A stretch of DNA of 64,000 nt from Anaeramoeba ignava BMAN (taxonomy: Eukaryota > Protista > Anaeramoebae): positions 39,550 to 103,549 of the forward strand of contig JAPDFW010000003.1 of the NCBI GenBank assembly GCA_028826165.1, read 5' to 3'. Numbering within the stretch: the first letter of the stretch is position 1; every line of letters begins with the position of its first letter. The position numbers and the translations under genes are program-made. Under the pieces are notes generated by a model that had not been told where the DNA came from, did not search any database, and saw nothing but the letters and a program-made list of their open reading frames with translations. Below are positions 8,432 to 51,836 of the stretch, piece after piece.

Positions 8432-11400
8432 ATGTCAATTTTTTCAGATAAATTATTTGATTCTTTTCAAATAAATAAAAAAAAACCTTTAAAAAAAAAA
8501 GAGGAAACAAATCAATTTAAAAATCCAAATCAAAAAATATATACAAAAAATTTTCAAAAGCCAAAACAAAAAAACGTACAAAGAAATAAAAAGAAAATTA
8601 ATGAAAAAAGTCAAATAAAAAATAATTTAGAGAATGAGAATAAAGAAGATGAAGATGATGAAGATTCTTTAATAGAAAAAGAGAAAATTGATAAAACAAT
8701 ATCAGCAGAAATTGGAGAAGTATTTATAGAAAATTGTTTACATGAAGTTTCTCTTCCTGAAGGATATGATATTAAAGGAAATGAAGGTTAAAATTAAAAT
8801 TCATTTATAAAATTTTAAATTTAATTAAAATTTAAAATTTTTTTTTATTTATTTAGATATTTTTAATCCTATTTATCCACAAGAACCTGCAAGAAATTAT
8901 CCTTTTAAATTAGATCCTTTTCAAAAAACTGGAATTGCTTGTTTGAATAGAGGTGATTCTGTTATTGTTTCTGCGCATACTTCTGCAGGAAAAACTGTTG
9001 TTGCTGAGTAAATTCATTTATAAAATCAAAATTAAAATTCATTTATAAAATTAAAATTAAATTAAAATTCAAATTAAAATTAAAATTAAAATTAAAATTA
9101 AAATTCAAATTAATATTAAAATTAAAAATAAAATCAAAATTAAAATTAAAATTAAAATTAAAATCAAAATTCATTTATAAAATTAAAATTAAAATTCATT
9201 TATAAAATTAAAATTAAAATTAAAATCAAAAGATATGCTATCGCACAAGCTTTAAAAAATAATGCAAGAGTTATTTATACATCTCCAATTAAAGTATTTT
9301 TTTTCTAAACAAAATCTTTGTTTCCATTATTTATTTCCATATTTATTTTATAAAAAAAAATCAAGGCTTTAAGTAATCAAAAATATAGAGAACTTAGTGA
9401 TGAATTTAAAGATGCAGGACTTATGACTGGAGATGTTACAATTAATCCAAATTCATCTTGTATTGTTATGACAACAGAAGTAAAAAATTCAATTAAAAAA
9501 TTCAATTAAAAAATTCAAATAAAAATTTCAATTAAAAAATTCAATTAAAAAATTTCAATATTATTACTATTTAATAAGATTCTTCGTAACATGCTTTATA
9601 GAGGATCGGAAATTCTCAGAGAAGTTCAATGTGTTATATTTGATGAAATTCATTATATGAAAGATATTGGTTTGAAATCTTTTAAATCAAAATTAAAAAT
9701 GAAATTTAAAATTAAAATTAAAATTAAAATTAAAATTAAAATTAAAATTAAAATTAAAATTAAAATTTAAAATTAAAATTAAAATTAAAATGAAATTCAA
9801 AATTAAAATCAAAAATAAAATTCAAAATTAAAATGAAATTTAAAATTCAAAATCAAAATTAAAATCAAAATTAAAATCAAAATTAAAATTAATATTAAAA
9901 TTAAAATTAAAATTCAAAATGAAATTCAAAATTTAAATTTAAAATTGAATTGGTAATAATTATTAGAAAGAGGAGTAGTTTGGGAAGAAACAATTATTCT
10001 TCTTCCAGATACAATTAGATTTGTTTTTTTATCTGCAACAATTCCTAATGCAAAAGAATTTTCTGATTGGATTGCAAAAATTCATTCACAACCTTGTCAT
10101 GTTGTTTATTCAGATGTTAGACCAATTCCTTTACAACATTACGTATTTCCTGCAGGTGGAAATGGTTTATATTTAGTTGTTGATGAACAAGGAAATTTTA
10201 GGGTTATTTTTAATTTAAATTTTTAATTTAAATTTTTATTTATTAATTTTTAATTATTAATTTTTAATTGAAATTTTTAATTATTAATTTTTAAAATAGG
10301 AAAAAAATTTCCAAAAAGCAATGTCTGTAATTTCAAATGCTCCAAATCAATGTATGAATAAAAAATAAATTTATTATTCTTTTTAGGATGAAAATGGAAA
10401 TAATTTTATTGATTTTTTATTATTAATAATTTGTGTTGGAAATATTAAGATAATGATAGAAGACCACAAAATCAAAAATATAAATCAGATATTTATAAGA
10501 TTATTAATTTGATTCTTGAAAGAAAATTTGAGCCTGTTATTGTGTTTAGTTTTAGTAGAAAAGAGTGTGAAATTAAAGCTTTAAAACTTGCTAAAGTGAT
10601 TATTTTTATTTGATGAAAGAAAATTATTGAATTATTTATATTTATAATTATTTATAATTATTTTTATTGTTGAAAAAATTGAAATAATAGATGGATCTTA
10701 ATGATGAAAATGAAAAAACTTTAGTTGATGAAATTTTTACTAATGCTATTGATTCTTTATCAGATGAAGACAAGAAAATTCCAGCAGTTTGTTAAAAAAA
10801 AAAAGAAAAAAAAATATTTTTAATTAAATATTAAAATATTATTATTATTATAATTATAAACTTTTTGTTAAAAGGTTCAACATATTCTTCCTTTATTAAA
10901 AAGAGGAATTGCTATTCATCATTCAGGATTATTACCAATTCTTAAAGAAGTTATTGAAATTTTATTTCAAGAAGGTTTAGTCAAAGTATTTGATAATAAT
11001 TTGATAATAATTTAATAATAATTTCAAAATAATTTAATAATAATTTAATAATAATTTAATAATAATTTCAAAATAATTTAATAATTTAATAATAATTTCA
11101 AAATAATTTGATAATAATTTAATAATTTAAAAATAATTTAATAATAATTTAATAATAAATGATAATAATTTAATAATAATTTAATAATAATTTAATAATA
11201 ATTTGATAATAATTTCTTTAATAATAATTTAATAATAATTTCATAATAATTTAATAATAATTTCATAATAATTTAATAATAATTTAATAATAAATTCATA
11301 ATAATTTGATAATTTATAATAAAAGGTTTTATTTGCAACAGAGACATTTTCAATGGGATTAAATATGCCAGCAAAAACAGTAATATTTAGTAGTGTAAGA

Positions 11401-13723
11401 AAATTTGATGGAAGTTCATTTAGATATATAACATGTGGAGAATATACACAAATGTCAGGAAGAGCAGGAAGACGTGGTCTTGATCAAAGAGGAATTGTTA
11501 TTACAATGCTTGATGAGAAAATGGAACCTTCTGATGCAAAAAATACTTTGAGAGGAGATCTCGATCCTTTGAATTCTACTTTCCATCTTAGTTATAATAT
11601 GTTGTTAAATTTATTGAGAGTTGAGGATATTGATCCTGAATATCTTCTTTCTAAATCTTTTCATCAATTCCAAAATGAAAGAAAACATCCAGAATTACAA
11701 GAAAGTATATTTCAAAAATTATTTAAAAAATTATTTCAAAAATTATTTATAAAATTATTTATAAAATTATTTCAAAAATTATTTCAAAAATTATTTATAA
11801 AATTATTTATAAAATTATTTATAAAATTATTTCAAAAATTATTTCAAAAATTATTTATAAAATTATTATAAAATCAAATACAAAATTATTTATAAAATTA
11901 TTTATAAAATTATTTATAAAATTATTTATAAAATTATTTATAAAATTATTTATAAAATTAATTATTAAATTATTTATAAAATTATTTATAAAATTATTAA
12001 TAAAATTATTTATAAAATTATTTTCAAAAATTATTTCAAAAATTATTTATAAAATCAAATACAAAATTATTTATAAAATTATTTATAAAATTATTTCAAA
12101 AATTATTTATAAAATTATTTATAAAATTATTTATAAAATTATTTATAAAATTATTTATAAAATTATTTATAAAATTATATATTAAATTATTTATAAAATT
12201 ATTTATAAAATTATTTATAAAATTATTAATAAAATTATTTATAAAATTATTTATAAAATTAAATATAAAATTATTTATAAAATTATTTATAAAATTATTT
12301 ATAAAATTAATTATTAAATTATTTATAAAATTATTTATTAAATTAAATATAAAATTATTTATAAAAAATTTCAAAAGATCTCCAAAAACTTCAATTACAA
12401 TTTGATTCTTTAAATATTGAAGAGGAAAAAAGTGTAACAGAATTTCATTCTGTAAAACAACAAATCGATAATTTAAAACAAAAAATCAAGGAAATCACAT
12501 TCAAACCAGTAAATATCCTTCCATTTCTTCAACAAGGAAGATTAGTGAAAATCAAGACAATAAAACAAGATTGGGATTGGGGAATAATGATTGATTTCGA
12601 ATATATTTATGATAACAACCCAAAAGGAGAAATAATAATAAATGGAGAAGCAACAGATTATGTGATGAATATAATAATTGAAACAAAACAAAATTCAAAT
12701 TCAAATTCAAATTCAAATATAAATGAAGAACCAGAAGCAGTTGAAGAAACCAATCGAGGAAACGGAGAAATGAAAATATTGCAGTTTCCTCTTCTTAGTT
12801 TGGATCAAGTAAGTCTTCTTCGAGTTCCAATTCCAAACGATGTACGAAGAAGCGAGAATGTTCAACATTATAAAAGAGTTCTTTCCGAAATTCGGAAAAG
12901 ATTTGAAAAAAACATCCCACTTTTGGATCCAGTGAAGGATATGAAAATAAGTGATAAAAACTTCAATAAATTTGTGGAAAGAGTGAATAATTTAGAAGGA
13001 AGAATGATAAACCAAAAAATATTCCAGAACAATCAAATGACAGAAGAGTACCAAAAGTACCAAGAAAAGCTCAATTTACAGGAGCAAATTGATGGTGTAA
13101 GAAAATCGCTTAAGGAATCTGAGGATGTTTTATTGAAAGAAAATCTGAAATACATGAAAAGAGTACTGAGAAAATTGGGATATACTAACAACGAGAATAT
13201 CATTGAAACCAAGGGAAGAATTGCATGTGAAATCAGCTCAGGAGACGAACTGCTAATTACAGAGATGATTTTCTCAGGAGCGTTTAATGAAATGGAAGTG
13301 GAACAAATTGTGGCTTTATCAAGTTGTTTTGTTTTCCAAGAAAAAGTGGACGAAATGTTAAAATTGAGAGAAGAACTTGAAACTCCCTTCCAAAAATTAC
13401 AATCAACAGCGCGATCGATAGCAATGGTTGCGCAGGAATGCAGAGTCGATATTGATATTGATAGATATGTTGAATCTTTTAAGCCAAATTTAATGGAAGT
13501 TGTTTATGAATGGGCAAAAGGAAAATCTTTTCTTGAAATTTCGAAAATGACGAATATTTTTGAGGGAAGTGTTATTCGCACAATGAGAAGATTGGATGAA
13601 ATTTTAAGGCAAATGTGTGCTGCTGCTCGTGCTATTGGAAATGGAGAATTGGAAGAGAAGTTTGCTCAAGGAATTACAAAAATTAAAAGAGATGTTGTTT
13701 TTGCAGCCAGTCTTTATTTATAA
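8432..13723 (+). CDS. MTR4: Exosome RNA helicase Mtr4 (SKIV2L2/Dob1)
   Basis: 12 phase-consistent exons: 8432-8786, 8857-9007, 9233-9293, 9366-9479, 9579-9669, 9967-10202, 10300-10351, 10450-10595, 10691-10786, 10875-10985, 11326-11704, 12378-13723. Motifs [39 protein letters not shown] and C-terminal [12 protein letters not shown]. Confidence 0.96.
11710..12370 (+). repeat. 12-bp intronic satellite (ATAAAATTATTT)n
   Basis: Read directly; fills the last Mtr4 intron. Confidence 0.93.
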
Positions 13724-13729
13724 GCGAAT

Positions 13730-15125
13730 TTATCAATTTACAACAAAATTTATCAAAGAATTTATAAAAGAATTTATCAAAGAATTTATAACAAAATTTA
13801 TAAAAGAATTTATAACAGAATTTATAAAAGAATTTATAACAAAATTTATCAAAGAATTTATAAAAGAATTTATAAAAGAATTTATAAAAGAATTTATCAA
13901 AGAATTTATAAAAGAATTTATAAAAAAATTTATAACAAAATTTATAACAAAATTTATAACAAAATTTATAACAAAATTTATAAAAGAATTTATCAAAGAA
14001 TTTATAACAAAATTTATAAAAGAATTTATAACAAAATTTATAACAAAATTTATAAAAGAATTTATAAAAAAATTTATAACAAAATTTATAAAAATTTATA
14101 ACAAAATTTATAAAAGAATTTATAACAAAATTTATAAAAAAATTTATAAAAGAATTTATAAAAAAATTTATAAAAGAATTTATAAAAGAATTTATAAAAG
14201 AATTTATAAAAAAATTTATAAAAGAATTTATAAAAGAATTTATAAAAGAATTTATAAAAGAATTTATAACAAAATTTATAAAAGAATTTATAACAAAATT
14301 TATAACAAAATTTATAAAAGAATTTATAACAAAATTTATAAAAAAATTTATAACAAAATTTATAACAAAATTTATAACAAAATTTATAACAAAATTTATA
14401 ACAAAATTTATAACAAATTTATAACAAAATTTATAACAAAATTTATAACAAAATTTATAACAAAATTTATAACAAAATTTATAACAAAATTTATAAAAGA
14501 ATTTATAACAAAATTTATAAAAAATTTATAACAAAATTTATAACAAAATTTATAAAAAAATTTATAAAAGAATTTATAACAAAATTTATAAAAAAATTTA
14601 TAAAAAAATTTATAAAAAAATTTATAAAAAAAATTTATAAAAAAATTTATAAAAAAAAATTTATAAAAAAAATTTATAAAAAAATTTATAACAAAATTTA
14701 TAACAAAATTTATAACAAAATTTATAACAAAATTTATAACAAAATTTATAACAAAATTTATAACAAAATTTATAAAAGAATTTATAACAAAATTTATAAC
14801 AAAATTTATAAAAAATTTATAACAAAATTTATAAAAGAATTTATAACAAAATTTATAAAAAAATTTATAAAAAAATTTATAAAAAAATTTATAAAAAAAT
14901 TTATAAAAAAATTTATAAAAAAATTTATAAAAAAATTTATAAAAAAATTTATAACAAAATTTATAAAAAAATTTATAAAAAAATTTATAAAAAAAATTTA
15001 TAAAAAGAATTTATAAAAAAATTTATAAAAAAATTTACAAAAAAATTTATCAAAAATTTTTATCAAAGAATTTATAAAAAGAATTTATAAAAATTTATAA
15101 AAGAATTTATAAAAGAATTTATAAA
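13730..15125. repeat. 12-bp satellite (ATAAAAGAATTT / ATAACAAAATTT / ATAAAAAAATTT)n between convergent MTR4 and MED11
   Basis: Read directly; starts a few bases after the MTR4 stop codon. Confidence 0.95.
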
Positions 15126-25600: not shown

Positions 25601-26606
25601 TTTAATCATCAAATTCGGGATCGAGAACCAAATTGTGACAAAATTAACTAGTTTTGTTGGAGTTGTTTCCGGAGGCGACACTGATTTGATCGACAACATG
25701 CAAGATGATTCAAGCGAACCTGACCAAGAAATGCAGAACGTAGGCGCAATTAATTTCACAGGAATAAACCGCGCAATGATTTATTCAGACGACGACGAAG
25801 ACACAGATTCCGGAGAAGAACCGACGAGATTTTCAAGAAGACAACGATCATATTCATTCTCCAATTCATCCGACGATATGGATTACGCACAACACATGGC
25901 GAATCGCAACGACGACGATACAGACGATGATCTTGACGACGATTCAGAAGATGATTCAGATGGAGCGGTAAATGTACCTAATATAAGAGGACCATCACTG
26001 GCGGTTCCACAACCGGCACAAATTTCGGTTAGTGATCAAGAAGATTTATCTGAATCAGATGATGATGATGATGATAGTGATGATAGTAGATCATCACCAC
26101 CACCAAGACGGCGCAGACAACGCTCAATTAGTCCTGCTTTTTTACGCGCGCCTCCTTCGCCATCAAATCAAAGACAGCTTTCAATAAGCAGATCAATGAG
26201 TAGATCAATGAGTAGATCAATGAGTAGATCAGTTAGTCAGGAATCAAACTCTGATTTTTATAGATCCTCCGAATCGGAAGACGAAGTTGAATCAACTCAA
26301 AATCAATCCCTTGATAATTCCCTTCTGAAAATCATCTTCTCTCAATCTGCAAAAGGATCTTGGATTCTGGACTCAAATTTGGCTCGTTTACTTTCTCTTG
26401 ATTTGAATAAGTGGAAAAATTCTAAACTTCCTTTGATTGATGAATCTATTTGGGCTACTGTTTCTGTTATTGCTTTTCTTCAGATTAAATTCCCTTCAAA
26501 GAGTAAGGAATGGTCTCTTGTTGTTTCAAAAGCTAGAAGATGGCTTGCTTCTACTTCTTCTGCTAATGTTGATGAACTTGTTGAAAAAGCAAAAGCTCTT
26601 TTTTAA
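22669..26606 (+). CDS. VIT + von Willebrand A domain protein (VWA5A-like), paralog 2
   Basis: Exons 22669-22958 and 24227-26606. VIT (PIECQFIFPLDETAVVTGLE), FLVDQSGSMSG, FLLTDGEV, acidic/SR-rich linker and C-terminal IIFSQSAKGSW...WATVSVIAFL. Confidence 0.9.
23040..24200 (+). repeat. (AAATAT)n intronic satellite
   Basis: Read directly. Confidence 0.95.
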
Positions 26607-32793: not shown

Positions 32794-34935
32794 ATGGCAA
32801 ATAATAACAATAATAATAATAATAGCAATCAATTTTTCAATCAAGAATTTGGAAATCAACAAATTGGAAACCAATATGGAAATCAATATGGAAATCAATA
32901 TGGAAACCAATATGGAAATCAACAAATTGGAAATCAATATGGAAATCAACAAATTGGAAATCAATATGGAAATCAATATGGAAATCAACAAATTGGAAAT
33001 CAATTTGGAAATCAATATGGAAATCAATATGGAAATCAATATGGAAATCAGCAAATTGGAAATCAACAAATTGGAAATCAATATGGAAACCAAAATGGAA
33101 ATCAACAAATTGGAAATCAGTATGACAATCAATTTTTCAATCAAGAATTTGGAAATCAATATGATAATCAATTATACAATGAATTATATAATGCATTTGA
33201 AAATCCGCAAGTTGAAAAACAAGTTGAAAAAGAAGTTAAAAAAGAAGTTCAAAATCAAATTCAAAATAAACAAATTGAAAAACAAGTTCAAAATGAACAG
33301 ATTGATAACCAACTTGATAGTCAATTCAAACAGCAAAAATCCAAAAACAAACAACAATCTAATACCCAAAATTTGGATTTATATTTAAATTCACCAGAAA
33401 CTTCAAATGATAAAAACCTTCTTGAACCATCAAAAATTCTTCCTGCAATTTTGGAAATTGAAAACTTTAATAAAAATAGTTTAACTGTTCAATTTATTCC
33501 TGAAAACTTTCGTAAATCATCTTCATCTGATAAATATTGTGATCGATTTCATATAAAAATTTTGTATTGCACAAAAAGTTTTTTATGTAAATTCATTTAT
33601 AAAAATTAAAATTCATTTATAAAATTAAAATTCATTTATAAAATTAAAATTAAAATTAAAATTCATTTATAAAATTAAAATTAAAATTAAAATTCATTTA
33701 TAAAATTAAAATTATTATTAAAATTAAAATTAAAATTAAAATTCATTTATAAAATTAAAATTAAATTTAAAATTAAAATTAAAATTCATTTATAAAATTA
33801 AAATTAAAATTATTATTAAAATTAAAATAATAAAGGGGATGTTATTTATGATAAAGATAATCTATCAATTTGCTCCTGATATTATTCTCCCAATTAATGA
33901 AGAATTTTCAATAGAAATATCACAAATACCTTCTTTAAACAAATGGAATTCAAACGATAACAAATCATTATTAAATGTATTAAATGAAATTTTTGGAATT
34001 TTTATTAAAAACCAACGGAAAATTTTTGAGGAATTTTCAAATCCAACAATTCAATTTCAATATACAACAATAATTGACATGGAATCATCACAATTTTTAT
34101 TTGATCAAGAAACTCAATCAGTTTTATTTGTTATTGGAATTGTAGAAGGATATTTGAAAAATCATAAATTTATTTTTGAATTTCAACCTCCTTATCAAAA
34201 ACCTTTAATTTCATTATTTGATTCTACAGGAAAAAAAATTAATTTGGAAATTCCTATTGAATGGACTTTGGAATCATATATTCCCGAATATATTAATATT
34301 TATCAACAGAAAATTCAAGAAAAAGAACAAAAAACAAAACAAGATCAAAAAATTAAAAAACAAATGATTAAAATTTGTTGTGGAATTTTTGGAAAGTAAT
34401 TTTTTGAAAGAAAAAGAATAAGAATTTTTTTGAAAATTTTTAAATTAATTTATTAAAAAAAAAAGACCTTTAGAATATGATTCAAAAACTTTTACAAAAG
34501 TTTCCTTTTTATTCAAATTTAGTTCACAATTTTCATTTATTACAACTTGTAAATTTAAATTAATATAAAAAATATAAATTCAATTTAAATTTAAATCAAA
34601 ATTTAAATCAAATTCAAAAAATAGTTGAAATGCCACAAAATTTTCCCAAATCAAAACCAATTGTTGCAATTCAAACAGTTAATTTTTTTTCAAAAGGAGT
34701 AACAGTTTATAGAAAATTAGAGGATTTTCCATATTCACCAACACTTTCACTTGATAAAATGGTTGAAGCAATTAGAAATTATATTGTTGTATATGTTACT
34801 GATCTTGATGAAAAATGTCAAGAAGTAACAAAAAAAAGACTTGAAAGAAAAAAAAAACTTGAACAACAACGAAGAATGATTGAAGAACAACAATATGTAT
34901 ATCAACAAACAGATCCTTATTCTCATCGTTGGTGA
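32794..34935 (+). CDS. BABAM2: BRISC/BRCA1-A complex member BABAM2 (BRE/BRCC45)-like, with QYGN-repeat N-terminus
   Basis: Exons 32794-33586, 33836-34395, 34466-34548, 34625-34935. CDRFHIKILY...WDVIY...APDII, PLEYDSKTFTKVSFL, PQNFPKSKP and FPYSP match BRE motifs. One apparent frameshift near 33850-33865. Confidence 0.78.
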
Positions 34936-36539: not shown

Positions 36540-39500
36540 TTAATAATTATTTTGAATTTGAATTAATAATTCAAACCACTTTTCAAGATTAAAATCATTT
36601 TCAGAAGAAATTATTATTTCTTGTTTTGTTGGAACTTCAGTCATAATAGAAATTTGTTTAACTTTCTTCTTATTAAATTTAGAAGTTTTCTTCAATTTAA
36701 CAATCTTCAAAAAACCAGTAATATGAATAATATCAATCAAATCTTTAAAACAATTAACTGGTAAATTTTCATAAATTGCAAGAAATTCAAGTTTGAGAAC
36801 AAAATAAACTTTGTTCCATTTTTTCTTTGATTTTCTTCTCATTAATCCAAATCCTTCCATTAATGTTGGTGTTTTCCAATTATCTTTCCACAAAAAAAAC
36901 AAATTCCTATTTGCAAATGTTTTTCCTGATTCAAATTTTCTTGCCGCTTCATTTTGACTTAAGGTGTCTTCAGATATTTGAGACTTTTCTTGATAAACAT
37001 CTTCTGGAATTGTTAATGAATCACTATATTCAGTTTCTCCGCTTGTTTCACTTAAATCCTCTGATTTATTTTTATCGCTTGTCATTTGTGATAATTGTGA
37101 TTCATTTGTTCCAATAGTCGATTTTTTTTCTGTGTGTTTTGTTGATATTTCTGATAAAAGTTTCTCAATAAATCCAATTTCCTTCATTAAAAACCCAATT
37201 TTTTCATTCAATTGAGTTGTTTCTCTGATCATTTTTTCTGTTTTATAAATTTCTATTTTCGGATTTTGTATAAGTTTCTTTTCTTTGATAAATCTTCGAA
37301 CTGATAAAAATAAATCATATCCATTTGCTTTACTTTGTCTCACATTTTGTAATTGTGAATCATATAATTGTGCCAAAAAGGATAATGGTGTATTCTTTAA
37401 GATTTTTTCCATTGTTAAATGTGTTGGATAACAAATTTCACCTTCAAAATTCTTTTTTTTTTTTTTTTTTGTTGTTTTAATAAAAATTTAAAGAAATTAT
37501 TTTAATTTTTTGTTTTCTTTTACAGAAATTCTTTTTAATAATTCAGTTGTTTGCGATGATTTTGCTTGAATTTCTTGATTTAAAGGTTGCAAATAAACTC
37601 TATTTGATCCAAATTGTTTTCCTGTTCCTAAAGCTTGAATTGCTGAAGATAAAAGTAATAAACCTCTTTCACTTTCAGAATCGATAGAATCTAATTTTTA
37701 TTTTTTGAAATTATTATTTTTTTTGGAATATAAATTTCTTTTTGAAAAATAAAAACAAACAATCAATAATTCCAAATGAAATTGGTAATAATATTGCTGG
37801 ACATAAAAATCTTAAAAATATTAAACTTCCAATCGCCTTTTCAAATTCTTCTAATCCCATAACCTCCATTTCATTTCTAATATGTGATGTGATTATTCTA
37901 AATCCAAAAGGAATTTTATCTGAAGTTTCAATAATTCTGTCAACTAATTTATGGAAATAAAACTTCAAATTTTTAAAGTTTCTTGCAATATTTTTAGGCA
38001 TTGCAATATAAGGATCCATTTCAAAATGCAAGTTATTTTTACAAATCTCATCAACGATATCATGGAAAGTTTCATGTAAATAATCCTTTGCAAAATGCGA
38101 TGAATATTTTGTTAATATTTTAGCCAAAACATCATTGGCTCTAAAAAGCATATCAGAATTTTTTTTAGTGATAATTTGTCGAGAAACTAAAAATTTAATC
38201 ATCGGAATAAAAATATCAAGTTGCAAAAACAAATAATAAAAATTATCCACAAGTTGTGGTTGAAATGATAAGCAATTTTCTTCATCAAGTGCTGCTTGTA
38301 AAAATATAATATCCTCAATAAACAAATATTCCCCAAGAATTTCCATTCCTTTCTCAATAACTTGTGAATTGGTATTTTTTTCATTTCCAAACGCTTTAAA
38401 TTCTTGATTCATTTTCGCAATTGATTTCTCAACTAATTCTTTTGATTTATCATCTAAAATCCTGTTAACAATCGCTCTAATTGTATTTCCAAGTGCAATT
38501 TTTATGGTTTGTGAAACTACCAATTGAGATTTTGATAGAGAATCCTTTTCTGTGAAAAACGAGAAATAATGATTTAATATTTTTGTCAAATTGATAAAAT
38601 CAACCAATCCAAATATGGCTGTATCAAGACTCTTATAAATAATATTTCGAATTAATTTCATTTGATCTAAATCATTTTGAACAAAAATTAAAATTAAAAT
38701 TAAAATTAAAATTAAAATTTTTTTTTGTTATTGTTTCTTGTGTTTCTCTTTCTTTCTTGAATTTACCGGAATTAACAAATGAACTTTCAATTAATTCTGA
38801 TGTTAATCTTGCTGTAATTTGCTGTTTAACAACCATTGTAAATGTAAATAAATCAAATAATAAAGATAATGATAAATTAGCTTCTTTTTCCAATTTACAA
38901 TTTTCTTGTATGATTTTTTGAATTTGAGAAGAAATGTATAAAGGATCACATCCATAATTATCTTGTGTTAATAATTCTTGATTAATTTGTTGTTGAATAA
39001 TTGGATTAAAATGATTTAAATTTAATTTAAGAATATCATTAATAATTTGGAAAAACAAATTTCGATTTAAATTTGAAATCAATCCCTAATTTTTTAAAAA
39101 TATATATTTAATAAAATTTATATAAATTTTTTTTTATTTTTTACATAATTATTTCTTAAATGAAACAATCTAAGTTTTTGGAAAAAGTCTAATTTTTGTG
39201 AATCTGAATTATTTGAATTTTCATCAATTTCTTCAAAAATTTTACTAAAAGTTTGAATAACAGTTTCAATTTTATGCATTTCTTGAAATTGTAAGAATGA
39301 GAATGATTCTAAATTAAGGAAATGGAATATAAAATCATCTTTAATTGTAATTTTTTCATTTTCAATTTCATTTTCATTTTGATTTTCATTTTGATTTTCA
39401 TTTATATTTTCATTTTCATTTTCATTTAAATTTATATTTTCATTTTCATTTTCATTTAAATTTATATTTTCATTTAAATTTTCATTTAAATTTATATTTT

Positions 39501-40714
39501 CATTTTCATTTTCATTTTCATTTTCATTTTCATTTTCATTTTCATTTTCATTTATATTTTCATTTTCATTTTCATTTAAATTTTCATTTTGATTTATATT
39601 TTCATTTTCATTTTCATTTTCATTTTCATTTAAATTTTCATTTTCATTGTGATTTATATTTTCATTTAAATTTTCATTTTCATTTTGATTTATATTTTCA
39701 TTTTCATTTTCATTTTCATTTTCATTTTCATTTTCATTTTCATTTTCATTTTCATTTATATTTTCATTTTCATTTTTCTTGCTTTTTTTTGATTTTAAAT
39801 TTTTTGTAAAATTAAATAATTCTTTATTTGAAATCATTTCAAATTTTTCTTGTTGAATTGAATTCATTAAATCATCTTGACTAAATCCAGTATCTTCTTG
39901 AGAATCAAAATTAGAATCAAAATCAAAATCAGTTGAAGTACTTGAAGTTGAAAGAACTAAATCATAATCAAAATCTTTTTGTTTAGTTTTAATTTCTAAA
40001 TTTTGATTTTTATCCTTTTTTTATTATTCATTTAAAATTTAATTTTTAATTTTGTTTTTGATTTTTTTTTTAAAAAATTTTTACATTTTTTTGATCTTCT
40101 TTTTCTGTTTCAATTTCTTTTAAATTTGGTTTCCATAAAAAAATATTAACTAAAAATTGAATAATTTCAGGTTCATCTCCCTATTTTTTAATATAAAACA
40201 TTATAAATTATAAATTATAAATTAAATTTTTTGTTTTAAATTCTTTTGTTTTAAAATTCACTTCAATTAAATTATTAGGATTAAATAAAAAACCAGTATA
40301 ATCAGTTTCTTTTAAAAAATCAAGTATTTTTAAAGCTCTTTCATAATAATTTTGTAAATTTGAAATTGATAAAAAGTTTTCATTTTGAGATAAAATGAAT
40401 AAAAGTTGAGATAAAATTAAACAATCCTTTTTTAAAATTTTAAATAAAAATAAATTTAAAATTTAATTCAAAAAAAAATTTTTTTTTCTTTGATTTTTTT
40501 AAAATTTTAAAAAATAAACTTTTAAATCGGTTTTAATATTTGAAATTTTCAACGTTTTTGAATTAATTTTAAATTGAAAATTAATCCATCTTTTTAATAA
40601 TTCAAGAGGATGAACAGTTTCAATTTTTTCATTTTGCTTCTTTTTTAATCTAAAAATATCTTTATGAAATGCAACTTTTAAAAGAATTTTACGATATTCT
40701 AATCTGTTTGTCAT
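36540..40714 (-). CDS. RasGAP-domain protein with N-terminal calponin-homology domain and C-terminal PH-like domain
   Basis: 8 phase-consistent exons: 40714-40520, 40426-40262, 40180-40085, 40014-39145, 39085-38767, 38666-37761, 37690-37524, 37451-36540. CH: LLKRWINFQF...TDLKDCLIL; RasGAP: LFRAN...IFLRFLCPAI; PH: EGFGLMRRKSKKKWNKVYFVL...EKWFELL. Confidence 0.85.
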
Positions 40715-48765: not shown

Positions 48766-51700
48766 TCAATTTATTTCTTTAATTCTCTTCATAACTTCGT
48801 CATTAAAATGTCTCAACAAACCTTCAATAGGCAAAGCAGCAGCTTCAGCCAAAGCACAAACAGTTGTACCTTTCATAGCAGCAACGATATCCTTAAGATA
48901 TTGAATTTCATTTTTGTTCGCAACACCAAGAACAAGACGGTCCATGATAGCATTAAGATAAGCAGTGCCTTCTCTGCATGGGATGCACTGACCACAAGAT
49001 TCGTGGTGATAGAAGTGAGCGAGACGAGCAATAGCCTTGATGATATCTGTAGATTTATCCATGACGATAACGGCACCAGTTCCAAGGGAAGTTTTAGCAT
49101 CAGCAAGAGAATCATAATCCATAAGAACATCTTGACAAATTTGCTTGGGAATAACAGGGGTTGAGGATCCGCCAGGGATTACGGCAAGGAGATTATCCCA
49201 ACCGCCAATAACACCGCCTGCATGTTTTTCAATTAAATCTTTGAGAGGGATTCCCATTTCCTCTTCAACAACACAAGGATTATTGACATGACCTGAAATT
49301 GAAAAGAGTTTTGTGCCGTGATTATTTTTTCTGCCGAACGAGTTATACCACGAGGATCCGCGGCGAAGAATCGTTGGGCATGAGGCAATTGTTTCTACGT
49401 TATTCACATTTGTTGGGCATCCCCATAAGCCATATTGTGGCGGGAAGGGTGGCTTGATTCGTGGTTTTCCTGCCTTCCCTTCAAGTGACTCAATCAGTGC
49501 TGTTTCTTCTCCGCAAACGTAAGCGCCTGCTCCTGGATGCACATATATGTCGAAATCGTATCCTGTCTTGCATGCGTTTTTCCCAATCATTCCTTCTTTA
49601 TATGCTTCTTGGATTGCTTCTTCTAATCGTTTTTGTGTTTCTTTGAATTCCCCTCGAATGTAAATGTATGCTGCTCGGCAGTTCATTGCATATCCAGCTA
49701 AAAGGCATCCTTCAATGAGCTTCTGTGGATCGTGTCTCATGATCTCCCGATCTTTACATGTTCCTGGTTCACCTTCGTCTGCGTTGATTACAAGGTATGA
49801 TGTTCTTTTTTTATCCGATTTTAAATTTTTAATTTTAATTTTATAAATGAATTTTAATTATAAATTTATAAATGAATTTTAATTTCATAAATGAATTTTA
49901 ATTTTAATTATAATTTTATAAATGAATTTTAATTATAAATTTATAAATGAATTTTAAAAATGAATTTTAATTTTAATTTTAATTTTAATTTTAATTTTAA
50001 TTTTAATTTTAATTTTAAATTTTAATTTTAATTTTAATTTTAAATTTTAATTTTAATTTTAATTTTGATTTTGATTTTGATTTTAATTTTAATTTTGATT
50101 TTAATTTTGATTTTAATTTTAATTTTAATTTTGATTTTAATTTTAATTATAATTTTATAAATGAATTTTAATTTTAATTACTTGTCACTATTTTGAGGCA
50201 TAAAAGACCATTTTAATCCAGTTGGAAAACCAGCACCACCTCTACCTCTTAAACCACTTGCTTTAATTTCATCAATAATATATTTTTTTCCTTTTTCAAT
50301 AATATTTTTTGTTTTATACCAATCTCCTCTTTTAATTGCTCCCTTTTAATTTAATTTTAATTTCAATTTAATTTCAATTTAATTTAATTTTATTTCAAAA
50401 TAATTTAATTTTATTTCAAAATAATTTAATTTTAATTTTAATTTAAATTTAATTTCAATTTAAATTTATTTCAATTTAAATTTATTTCAAAATAATTTAA
50501 TTTTAATTTTATTTCAAAATAATTTAATTTTAATTTTATTTCAATTTTATTTCAATTTAATTTTAATTTTAATTTTAATTTCAATTTTAATTTCAATTTT
50601 AATTTCAATTTTAATTTCATTTTAATTATTTCAATTTAATTTCAAAATAATTTCAATTTCAATTTAATTTCAATTTTAATTTAATTTCAATTTAATTTTA
50701 ATTTAATTTTAATTTCAATTTAATTTCAATTTTAATTTAATTTCAATTTAATTTTAATTTTAATTTTAATTTTAATTTCAATTTAATTTCAATTTAATTT
50801 CAATTTTAATTTAATTTCAATTTAATTTAATTTCAATTTAATTTAATTTTATTTCAATTCAATTTAATTTTATTTCAATTTCAATTTAATTTTAATTTCA
50901 ATTTAATTTTAATTTAATTTCAATTTAATTTCAATTTCAATTTCAATTTCAATTTCAATTTAAATTTAATTTTAATTTTAATTTCAATTTCAATTTCAAT
51001 TTTAATTTTATTTTAATTTCAATTTAATTTAATTTCAATTTTGATTTAATTTTAATTTCAATTTAATTTTAATTTCAATTCAATTTAATTTTAATTTTAT
51101 TTTAATTTAATTTTAATTTAATTTCAATTTCAATTTAATTTAATTTTAATTTAATTTTAATTTAATTTCATTTCATTTTAATTTTAATTTCAATTTAATT
51201 TTAATTTCAATTTAATTTAATTTAATTTTAATTTAATTTCAATTTTGATTTAATTTCAATTTAATTTTAATTCAATTTCAATTTTGATTTAATTTCAAAA
51301 TAATTTCAATTTTATTTTAATTTAATTTCAATTTTATTTCAATTTTATTTCAATTTTAATTTAATTTAATTTTAATTTCAATTTAATTTTTAATTTAATT
51401 TAATTTTAATTTCAATTTAATTTCAATTTCAATTTAATTTTAATTTCAATTTAATTTTAATTTCAATTTAATTTTAATTTCAATTTTAATTTAATTTCAA
51501 TTTTAATTTCAATTTAATTTAAATTTTAATTTCAATTTAATTTTAATTCAATTTCAATTTTGATTTAATTTCAAAATAATTTGTTTTGTTTTGTTTTGTT
51601 TTGTTTTGTTTTGTTTTTGTTGCTTATTTTAAATTTATATAAAAAAAAAATTTTTTTTATACCTGGATTTTCCAATCATGATCACCATATAAATTTGTAA

Positions 51701-51836
51701 ATACTCTGTCTGAATCCTTTAAATCACCATAAAATCGTTGTCCAACTTGAGAAACTAAAGTTTTCGTAAATTGTGTAGAAGTTATTTTTTGTAAACTTTT
51801 CAAAGAAGTTCGATGAGCTTTAATTATTGAAAGCAT
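48766..51836 (-). CDS. nuoF: NADH dehydrogenase 51-kDa flavoprotein subunit (NuoF/NDUFV1) with organellar presequence
   Basis: Exons 51836-51663, 50342-50182, 49804-48766 (457 aa). [40 protein letters not shown] and the Fe-S motif [13 protein letters not shown]...C. Confidence 0.97.
50345..51580 (-). repeat. (AAATTG/AAATTA)n intronic satellite
   Basis: Read directly; NuoF intron 1. Confidence 0.93.

Follow-up and report, generated by a model that had tools for sequence, protein, structure and literature searches.

Are the 3' splice sites of Anaeramoeba ignava BMAN read by an atypical code? The question is raised by a 64-kb stretch of its genome (contig C5, JAPDFW010000003.1, positions 39550-103549; hereafter, the window), in which close to half of the introns end in AAG, and in particular by the gene for an MTR4/Dob1-type exosome RNA helicase located there, where seven of eleven introns do so. 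In the original prediction, made from the letters of the window, these acceptors, often found behind runs of A, were taken as an atypical acceptor code, with many introns being recognised without a polypyrimidine tract. AAG acceptors probably represent the usual code in a relaxed form and do not amount to a new one, the introns that they close being ordinary U2-type GT-AG introns, whose signals have decayed to nearly bare dinucleotides within sequences that combine about 90% A+T with an A-rich sense strand.

The window has a G+C content of 19.2% and belongs to an assembly of 42.8 Mb in 147 contigs. According to the genome paper, the genome is 80.65% A+T overall and contains 32,108 introns, with 8.14% G+C, a modal length of 76 nt and 99.8% of them GT-AG, and polyA+ RNA-seq helped its annotation (PMC11550330). 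The intron sample used here covers 264 kb, that is, the window and positions 100001-300000 of contig C1, and was obtained with a purpose-written gene finder, a two-strand dynamic programming procedure that scores codon log-odds against an A+T-rich background. GT and AG are obligatory in it, and it includes neither a weight matrix, nor a -3 term, nor a pyrimidine-tract term.

Acceptors of MTR4 and of other checked genes

The product of the MTR4 gene is matched in Pfam by DEAD, Helicase_C, MTR4 stalk, beta-barrel and DSHCT, and its best matches in the PDB are the yeast and human MTR4 proteins. Junctions were checked exon by exon with phmmer against solved structures (residue numbers are those of yeast, chain 4u4c_A) and with Pfam profiles, as follows:

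8432..13723, + strand: MTR4/Dob1-type exosome RNA helicase gene, 12 exons, 11 introns, about 1045 amino acids (gene finder, Pfam, PDB)
8787..8856, + strand: intron 1, 70 nt, donor GTTAAA, acceptor TAG behind a T-rich run (gene finder)
9008..9232, + strand: intron 2, 225 nt, body free of G, 6-nt tandem repeat throughout, acceptor AAG (exon 2 to residue 106, codon 107 split, exon 3 from 108)
9294..9365, + strand: intron 3, 72 nt, acceptor AAG behind a run of nine A (exon 3 to 127, exon 4 from 128)
9480..9578, + strand: intron 4, 99 nt, acceptor AAG (exon 4 to 165, exon 6 from 197, length of exon 5 fits)
9670..9966, + strand: intron 5, 297 nt, 6-nt tandem repeat, acceptor TAG (length fit of exon 5)
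10203..10299, + strand: intron 6, 97 nt, acceptor TAG (gene finder; exon 6 to residue 274)
10352..10449, + strand: intron 7, 98 nt, acceptor AAG (gene finder only, variable loop without homology support)
10596..10690, + strand: intron 8, 95 nt, acceptor TAG (gene finder; exon 9 from residue 354)
10787..10874, + strand: intron 9, 88 nt, acceptor AAG (exon 9 covers 354-385, exon 10 from 386)
10986..11325, + strand: intron 10, 340 nt, 11-nt tandem repeat, acceptor AAG (exon 10 to 422, exon 11 from 423)
11705..12377, + strand: intron 11, 673 nt, 54 copies of a 12-nt repeat, acceptor AAG (Pfam PF21408)

The eleven introns that had been placed by hand, the first starting at 8787 and the last ending at 12377, are thus recovered with the same limits by the gene finder, and their acceptors are, in order, TAG, AAG, AAG, AAG, TAG, TAG, AAG, TAG, AAG, AAG and AAG (seven AAG and four TAG). 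On yeast Mtr4, exon 2 matches up to residue 106, exon 3 residues 108-127, exon 4 128-165, exon 6 197-274, exon 9 354-385, exon 10 386-422 and exon 11 423-544, the single residues absent between matches being split codons. The family and structure searches covered the exons other than exon 5, which was fitted by length arithmetic only and which, with its 30 codons and a split codon, exactly covers residues 166-196 by length. At the last junction, position 22 of PF21408 (MTR4 stalk) lies at the end of exon 11 and position 24 at the start of exon 12. Because of this exon-to-exon continuity along Mtr4 and the Pfam profile, six of the seven AAG acceptors (9232, 9365, 9578, 10874, 11325 and 12377) are fixed without gaps. 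It has to be noted that the homology searches used single exons, and that the joined spliced models were compared only locally with database proteins.

Most of the MTR4 intron sequence is micro- and minisatellite DNA in tandem, with repeat units of 6, 11 and 12 nt (9021-9231, 9684-9946, 10988-11313 and 11715-12366), and intron length in this gene is mostly repeat expansion. Downstream of it, tandem repeats of 12 and 48 nt occupy about 1.4 kb (13735-15100) and contain long stop-free frames that mislead a simple gene finder.

Outside MTR4, one further gene of the window and three introns with A-tract acceptors are relevant:

48766..51836, - strand: NuoF / NDUFV1 (51-kDa flavoprotein) gene, 457 amino acids, introns 49805-50181 and 50343-51662, both with acceptor AAG, the first behind seven A
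37452..37523, - strand: 72-nt intron of a RasGAP/PH-domain gene, acceptor A17-AG (gene finder only; RasGAP and PH domains in the flanking exons)
34396..34465, + strand: 70-nt intron of a BRE-like gene, acceptor A10-AG (gene finder only; BRE domain in exon 1)
40015..40084, - strand: 70-nt intron, acceptor A7-AG (gene finder only)

The A-tract acceptors that had been singled out by eye, A17-AG at 37452 (-), A10-AG at 34465 and A7-AG at 49805 (-) and 40015 (-), were all reproduced by the gene finder, which holds no prior for them. The NuoF model is identical over all 457 amino acids to the deposited A. ignava protein P0001, a word search with one of its exons gave 100% identity to the NCBI entry 'NADH dehydrogenase [ubiquinone] flavoprotein 1 [Anaeramoeba ignava]', and the Pfam family Complex1_51K runs unbroken across the junction. 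A deposited PARP-family protein (P0121) has a unique place in the C1 sample, where its gene is interrupted by six introns. All of them match the prediction, and one, the sole AAG, ends in A11-AG. In total, 19 introns were checked (11 in MTR4, two in NuoF and six in the PARP gene), which have GT...AG ends and whose removal restores a conserved protein frame, ten of them ending in AAG and nine in TAG.

It could be argued that AAG acceptors are an artefact of misplaced introns, the true acceptors being nearby YAG, taking into account that the gene finder gave at least one false intron and one donor shifted by 6 nt, and that AAG codons of the downstream exon could pass for acceptors. This explanation is scarcely credible, since ten of the eleven MTR4 junctions are counted as fixed by gapless protein continuity, the two NuoF and six PARP introns equal a deposited annotation informed by RNA-seq, more than half of the checked introns end in AAG, and A still accounts for 40% of -3 positions where a single acceptor is compatible with the frame.

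Two side observations concern the predicted introns themselves. Those of 33-36 nt are unreliable: the one at L014:2228-2263 is absent from the deposited PARP protein and hence false, and the one at 26200-26232 of the window sits in a repeat. At positions 171539-172680 of contig C1, five consecutive predicted introns (108-142 nt) have near-identical 3' ends and short exon starts, forming a tandem array of intron-exon cassettes.

The base before AG and its background

Among the 40 introns placed by hand, 20 had been assigned TAG, 19 AAG and one CAG acceptors, and a similar picture is obtained from the 58 introns of the window models, in which the base at -3 is A in 30, T in 24, C in three and G in one. 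Over the whole intron sample, the base at -3 is distributed as follows:

All predicted introns (n=197): A 50%, T 41%, C 7%, G 2%
Stricter set (n=124): A 44%, T 45%, C 9%, G 2%
Strictest filters (n=114): A 46%, T 44%, C 6%, G 4%
Strictest filters, introns of up to 150 nt (n=65): A 37%, T 52%, C 6%, G 5%
Strictest filters, introns above 150 nt (n=49): A 59%, T 33%, C 6%, G 2%
Single frame-compatible acceptor (n=67): A 40%, T 52%, C 7%, G 0%

Across filters, AAG therefore ranges from 37 to 59%, TAG from 33 to 52%, CAG from 6 to 9% and G at -3 from 2 to 5%. The long introns filled with repeats are the most A-rich and the ones with most AAG acceptors (59%).

This distribution is no different from that expected of the local base composition (p 0.2-0.28). 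AAG frequency is fully explained by composition, which is the first half of the outcome that the original prediction had itself set against its claim. A better-suited comparison is with the base found before AG, or before any A, in non-coding DNA:

Unused NAG inside introns: A 66%, T 13-19%
Intergenic NAG: A 65%, T 23%
Base before any A in the 3' region of introns: A 62%, T 23%

When used acceptors are compared with the NAG background, T is enriched and G depleted, the odds of T over A in used versus unused NAG being 4.4 in introns of up to 100 nt (p 2e-4) and 5.3 in the stricter set (p 3e-10). The A-runs that precede AAG have a mean length of 4.26 at used acceptors, 3.73 at unused intronic sites and 4.02 at intergenic ones, so that used acceptors do not have the longer runs (p 0.11 and 0.58). 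The frequency of AAG and A-tract acceptors equals or falls short of that with which A stands before AG in general in this genome, and beneath the background the usual order of preference at -3 (T and C above A, and A above G) survives. The atypical acceptor code is not borne out by these data, nor by the U2 snRNA, the U2AF65-like proteins and SF1, which are conventional, as described below.

In many eukaryotes, the sense strand of introns is U-rich. In the window and the C1 sample, introns are A-rich on this strand, with A at 0.50-0.53, T at 0.36-0.38, C at 0.065 and G at 0.045. In both introns and intergenic DNA, AG and CT are found at 0.5-0.66 of expectation and GT and AC at 0.3-0.5, with GA/TC and TG/CA at 1.3-2.3; through this genome-wide, strand-symmetric bias, the rare G and C lie mostly in a T-(G/C)-A context. 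The shortage of AG and GT is a consequence of the same genome-wide dinucleotide bias. Selection against cryptic splice sites was considered as its cause and ruled out, given that the depletion is strand-symmetric (CT and AC are equally affected) and is also intergenic.

With G making up only 4-5% of intron bases and AG present at half the expected rate, about half of the short introns have no AG besides the acceptor (44-50% of introns in the sample). A stands before 65% of the AG in non-coding DNA, with the result that a spliceosome whose preference at -3 is only mild uses AAG in 40-50% of introns. GT and AG are informative enough alone, and AAG is routine, because G is rare in introns that are 90% A+T.

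Donors, tract, branch site and splicing machinery

The donors had been described as degenerate, and they are weak in the whole sample, with A at +3 in 55%, A at +4 in 59%, A at +5 in 56% (G only in 14%) and T at +6 in 52%. Among the 197 predicted donors, none has the U12-type sequence (G/A)TATCCTT; about 32 U12-type introns are reported elsewhere in the genome (PMC11550330). When information content is measured relative to the intron background, donors retain 4.63 bits at G and 1.49 at T, and at most 0.16 at each position from +3 to +8. Acceptors retain 0.91 bits at A and 4.63 at G, with -3 holding 0.04 and no position further upstream (to -15) more than 0.11. The probable reason why splice signals have been reduced to GT and AG is the composition of the introns, with an A+T content of about 90% and a sense strand rich in A.

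Upstream of the acceptor, positions -4 to -12 are A-rich and T is mildly enriched at -13 to -28, at least seven pyrimidines among the nine positions from -12 to -4 being present in only 23 of 197 introns. Neither the great pyrimidine majority at -3 nor the tract directly upstream of AG that characterise metazoan-type sites was found. About a third of introns carry a pyrimidine run, 13-28 nt upstream of the acceptor. The part of the original prediction by which many introns have no tract beside AG is upheld by these data, as in 32% of introns the last 40 nt hold no pyrimidine run of more than 3. An atypical code is not supported, in that pyrimidine runs of at least 6 are still enriched three-fold at 3' ends, where they appear in 26-29% of introns versus 8-9% of mid-intron windows (introns of at least 130 nt, p 3e-5). 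A-runs of at least 6 are likewise more frequent near the acceptor (27-32%) than in the middle of introns (11-12%).

As regards the splicing machinery, inspection of the U2 snRNA and of the U2AF65 RRMs, which had been suggested as a check, reveals canonical components. The U2 snRNA (C13:508571-508783, 107.7 bits) keeps its branch-binding GUAGUA intact. Two further U2-like copies of 127 nt (C57:254345-254471 and C67:346616-346742, 52.3 bits each) conserve the 5' half with GUAGUA and lack the 3' stem-loops, and may be truncated variants or pseudogenes. Two U2AF65-like loci have been located (C74:33977-37603 and C46:89463-93641), each with RRM1, RRM2 and a C-terminal UHM; their best PDB match is human U2AF65 RRM1,2 (E 6e-23), their best family is TIGR01642, and their RNP motifs resemble those of the human protein. 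The individual pieces score below the full-length cut-off of TIGR01642, as expected for single exons. In the copy on C74, the N-terminus is rich in histidine and serine, and one of the gene's own introns ends in A16-AG. A protein word search with a U2AF65-like exon gave no match at 1e-10, deposited A. ignava proteins in the length range included. An SF1 gene is also present.

U2AF35 is probably encoded in the genome as well, judging from weak candidate matches, namely two CCCH matches 492 nt apart on the same strand (C60:946655-947218), the second ending in CNFLH, and a further CCCH finger, GVCRHG, at C93:27926. The top zf-CCCH matches were examined as U2AF35 candidates and rejected, since they correspond to eight TTP/TIS11-like tandem-finger genes and one Cwc24-like gene. 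The eight TTP/TIS11-like genes lie on C64, C104, C1, C82, C76, C94, C115 and C122, with an intron between the finger exons where both are resolved.

For U1 snRNA, no Rfam match was obtained in the genome, even at E 10. A lead on C56 (108784-108826, + strand), consisting of ATTTACCT, 26 nt and ATCACGAAG, failed both the stem test and the U1A loop-word test and was rejected. It is the sole genome match to TTACCT followed, after a gap of 8-30 nt, by ATCACGAAG, for which we estimate a chance expectation of about 0.5, and it has not been used as evidence. Were it U1, the A that is common at donor +5 would be paired by its U at position 4.

Two U2AF65-like paralogues, about a third of introns with no pyrimidine run above 3 and an excess of A-runs at 3' ends are also what might be expected if the 3' site were recognised differently, tract-dependent U2AF having been given up and either a U2AF65 paralogue or a changed U2AF35 reading A-rich or AAG sequences, or no U2AF help being required. 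The GC-balanced introns of A. pumila, discussed below, show no 3' conservation past AG and hint in the same direction, towards a lineage trait. We consider this explanation doubtful, given the four- to five-fold preference for T at -3 over background, the equal A-runs before used and unused AAG, the three-fold enrichment of pyrimidine runs, and the match of the RNP motifs of both U2AF65-like proteins to the human ones, with U2 and SF1 canonical.

For ordinary U2-type introns with decayed signals, the following scheme can be proposed. U2, through GUAGUA, would pair with degenerate U/A-rich branch sites, assisted by SF1, and the two U2AF65 paralogues would bind U runs where these are present. 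The acceptor would be the AG that comes next, its choice depending on the scarcity of AG and the short length of the introns, with no tract involved, and the A-tracts before AG would be background carrying no signal.

Several points weigh against such a reading. Most of the 197 introns are ab initio predictions, and acceptor use rests here on protein continuity and on the deposited annotation. The gene finder made errors, namely one false 36-nt intron, close to the stop, among the seven of the PARP gene and the 6-nt donor shift already mentioned. U2AF35, represented by candidate matches only, may contain an altered reader of the -3 position. No usable published -3 tables for Dictyostelium, Entamoeba, Plasmodium or Tetrahymena and ciliates were found in the literature. 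No AG-exclusion zone was seen upstream of acceptors in the predicted introns, and a strict rule of the first AG after the branch is thus unsupported. Finally, no branch motif was detected, as CTRAY-like words are neither enriched nor positioned and no word peaks in the last 60 nt; the words that are enriched, TCAAA and TTGAA, are evenly spread and reflect the genome-wide T-C/G-A context.

This last result also bears on the possibility that the acceptor is set by a fixed distance from an anchored branch point, the tract and the -3 base being irrelevant. In Trichomonas, Giardia and Yarrowia, the branch point is anchored 2-4 nt from AG and there is no tract (Irimia and Roy 2008, PMC2483917). A. 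ignava shares with them the lack of a tract beside AG, and Anaeramoeba is, like the first two, a metamonad. Unlike them, it lacks any motif that is conserved or anchored within 60 nt of the acceptor, and its 3' ends are visibly heterogeneous, which makes such a mechanism very improbable.

Significance and comparison with known systems

Another proposal is that Anaeramoeba, a lineage rich in introns, picks its 3' splice sites by AG alone, the tract and the -3 base being dispensable and U2AF relaxed or re-purposed, as a trait of the lineage. A lineage-wide loss of dependence on these signals stays alive because GC-balanced A. pumila also shows only AG, its RNA-seq-supported introns having no other 3' conservation (bioRxiv 10.64898/2026.04.11.717937). 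A. pumila has only 22 introns, in which the 5' GTTAGT is strong and the branch motif is CT(G/c)AC (10.64898/2026.04.11.717937), whereas A. ignava has about 32,000, with weak donors and no detectable branch motif. We regard selection by AG alone as unlikely; if true, it would provide a natural model of tract-independent 3' choice over about 32,000 introns.

Ordinary introns with decayed signals are the reading that we prefer. In the genome paper, Supplementary Note 1 (Jerlstrom-Hultqvist et al. 2024) describes the bases flanking splice sites as heavily weighted to A and T, and Fig. S20D is presented in its legend as showing donor and acceptor logos for A. ignava BMAN (PMC11550330). The text of that paper, leaving aside the values within the logos, contains no mention of AAG acceptors, of tracts or of a background-corrected preference (PMC11550330). 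The explicit AAG share, the background-corrected preference and the A-tract test are, with respect to it, small additions. They do not point to new machinery. They show how far splice signals may degenerate where base composition takes over their role, and they offer a clean test case for separating the selected and the background share of a 3' splice-site consensus. For gene finding in such genomes, the consequence is practical, as models trained on YAG and a tract will misplace acceptors.

In animals and plants, more than 90% of -3 positions are occupied by a pyrimidine. The canonical 3' splice site of these organisms and that of A. ignava have in common GT-AG ends, a U2 with GUAGUA, U2AF65-like proteins and SF1, the ranking of T and C above A above G at -3, and pyrimidine runs at 3' ends. 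They differ in that A. ignava has a pyrimidine at -3 in 50-58% of cases, is A-rich at -4 to -12, has no tract in a third of its introns and concentrates its information in AG.

In the A+T-rich amoebozoans Dictyostelium and Entamoeba, poly-T forms one peak, located 15-40 nt upstream of the acceptor (Irimia and Roy 2008, PMC2483917). Unlike theirs, the introns of A. ignava are richer in A than in T on the sense strand. With this difference, the 3' splice sites of A. ignava resemble those of Dictyostelium and Entamoeba in their enrichment in T away from AG, at -13 to -28, in introns of about 90% A+T and in a weak branch consensus.

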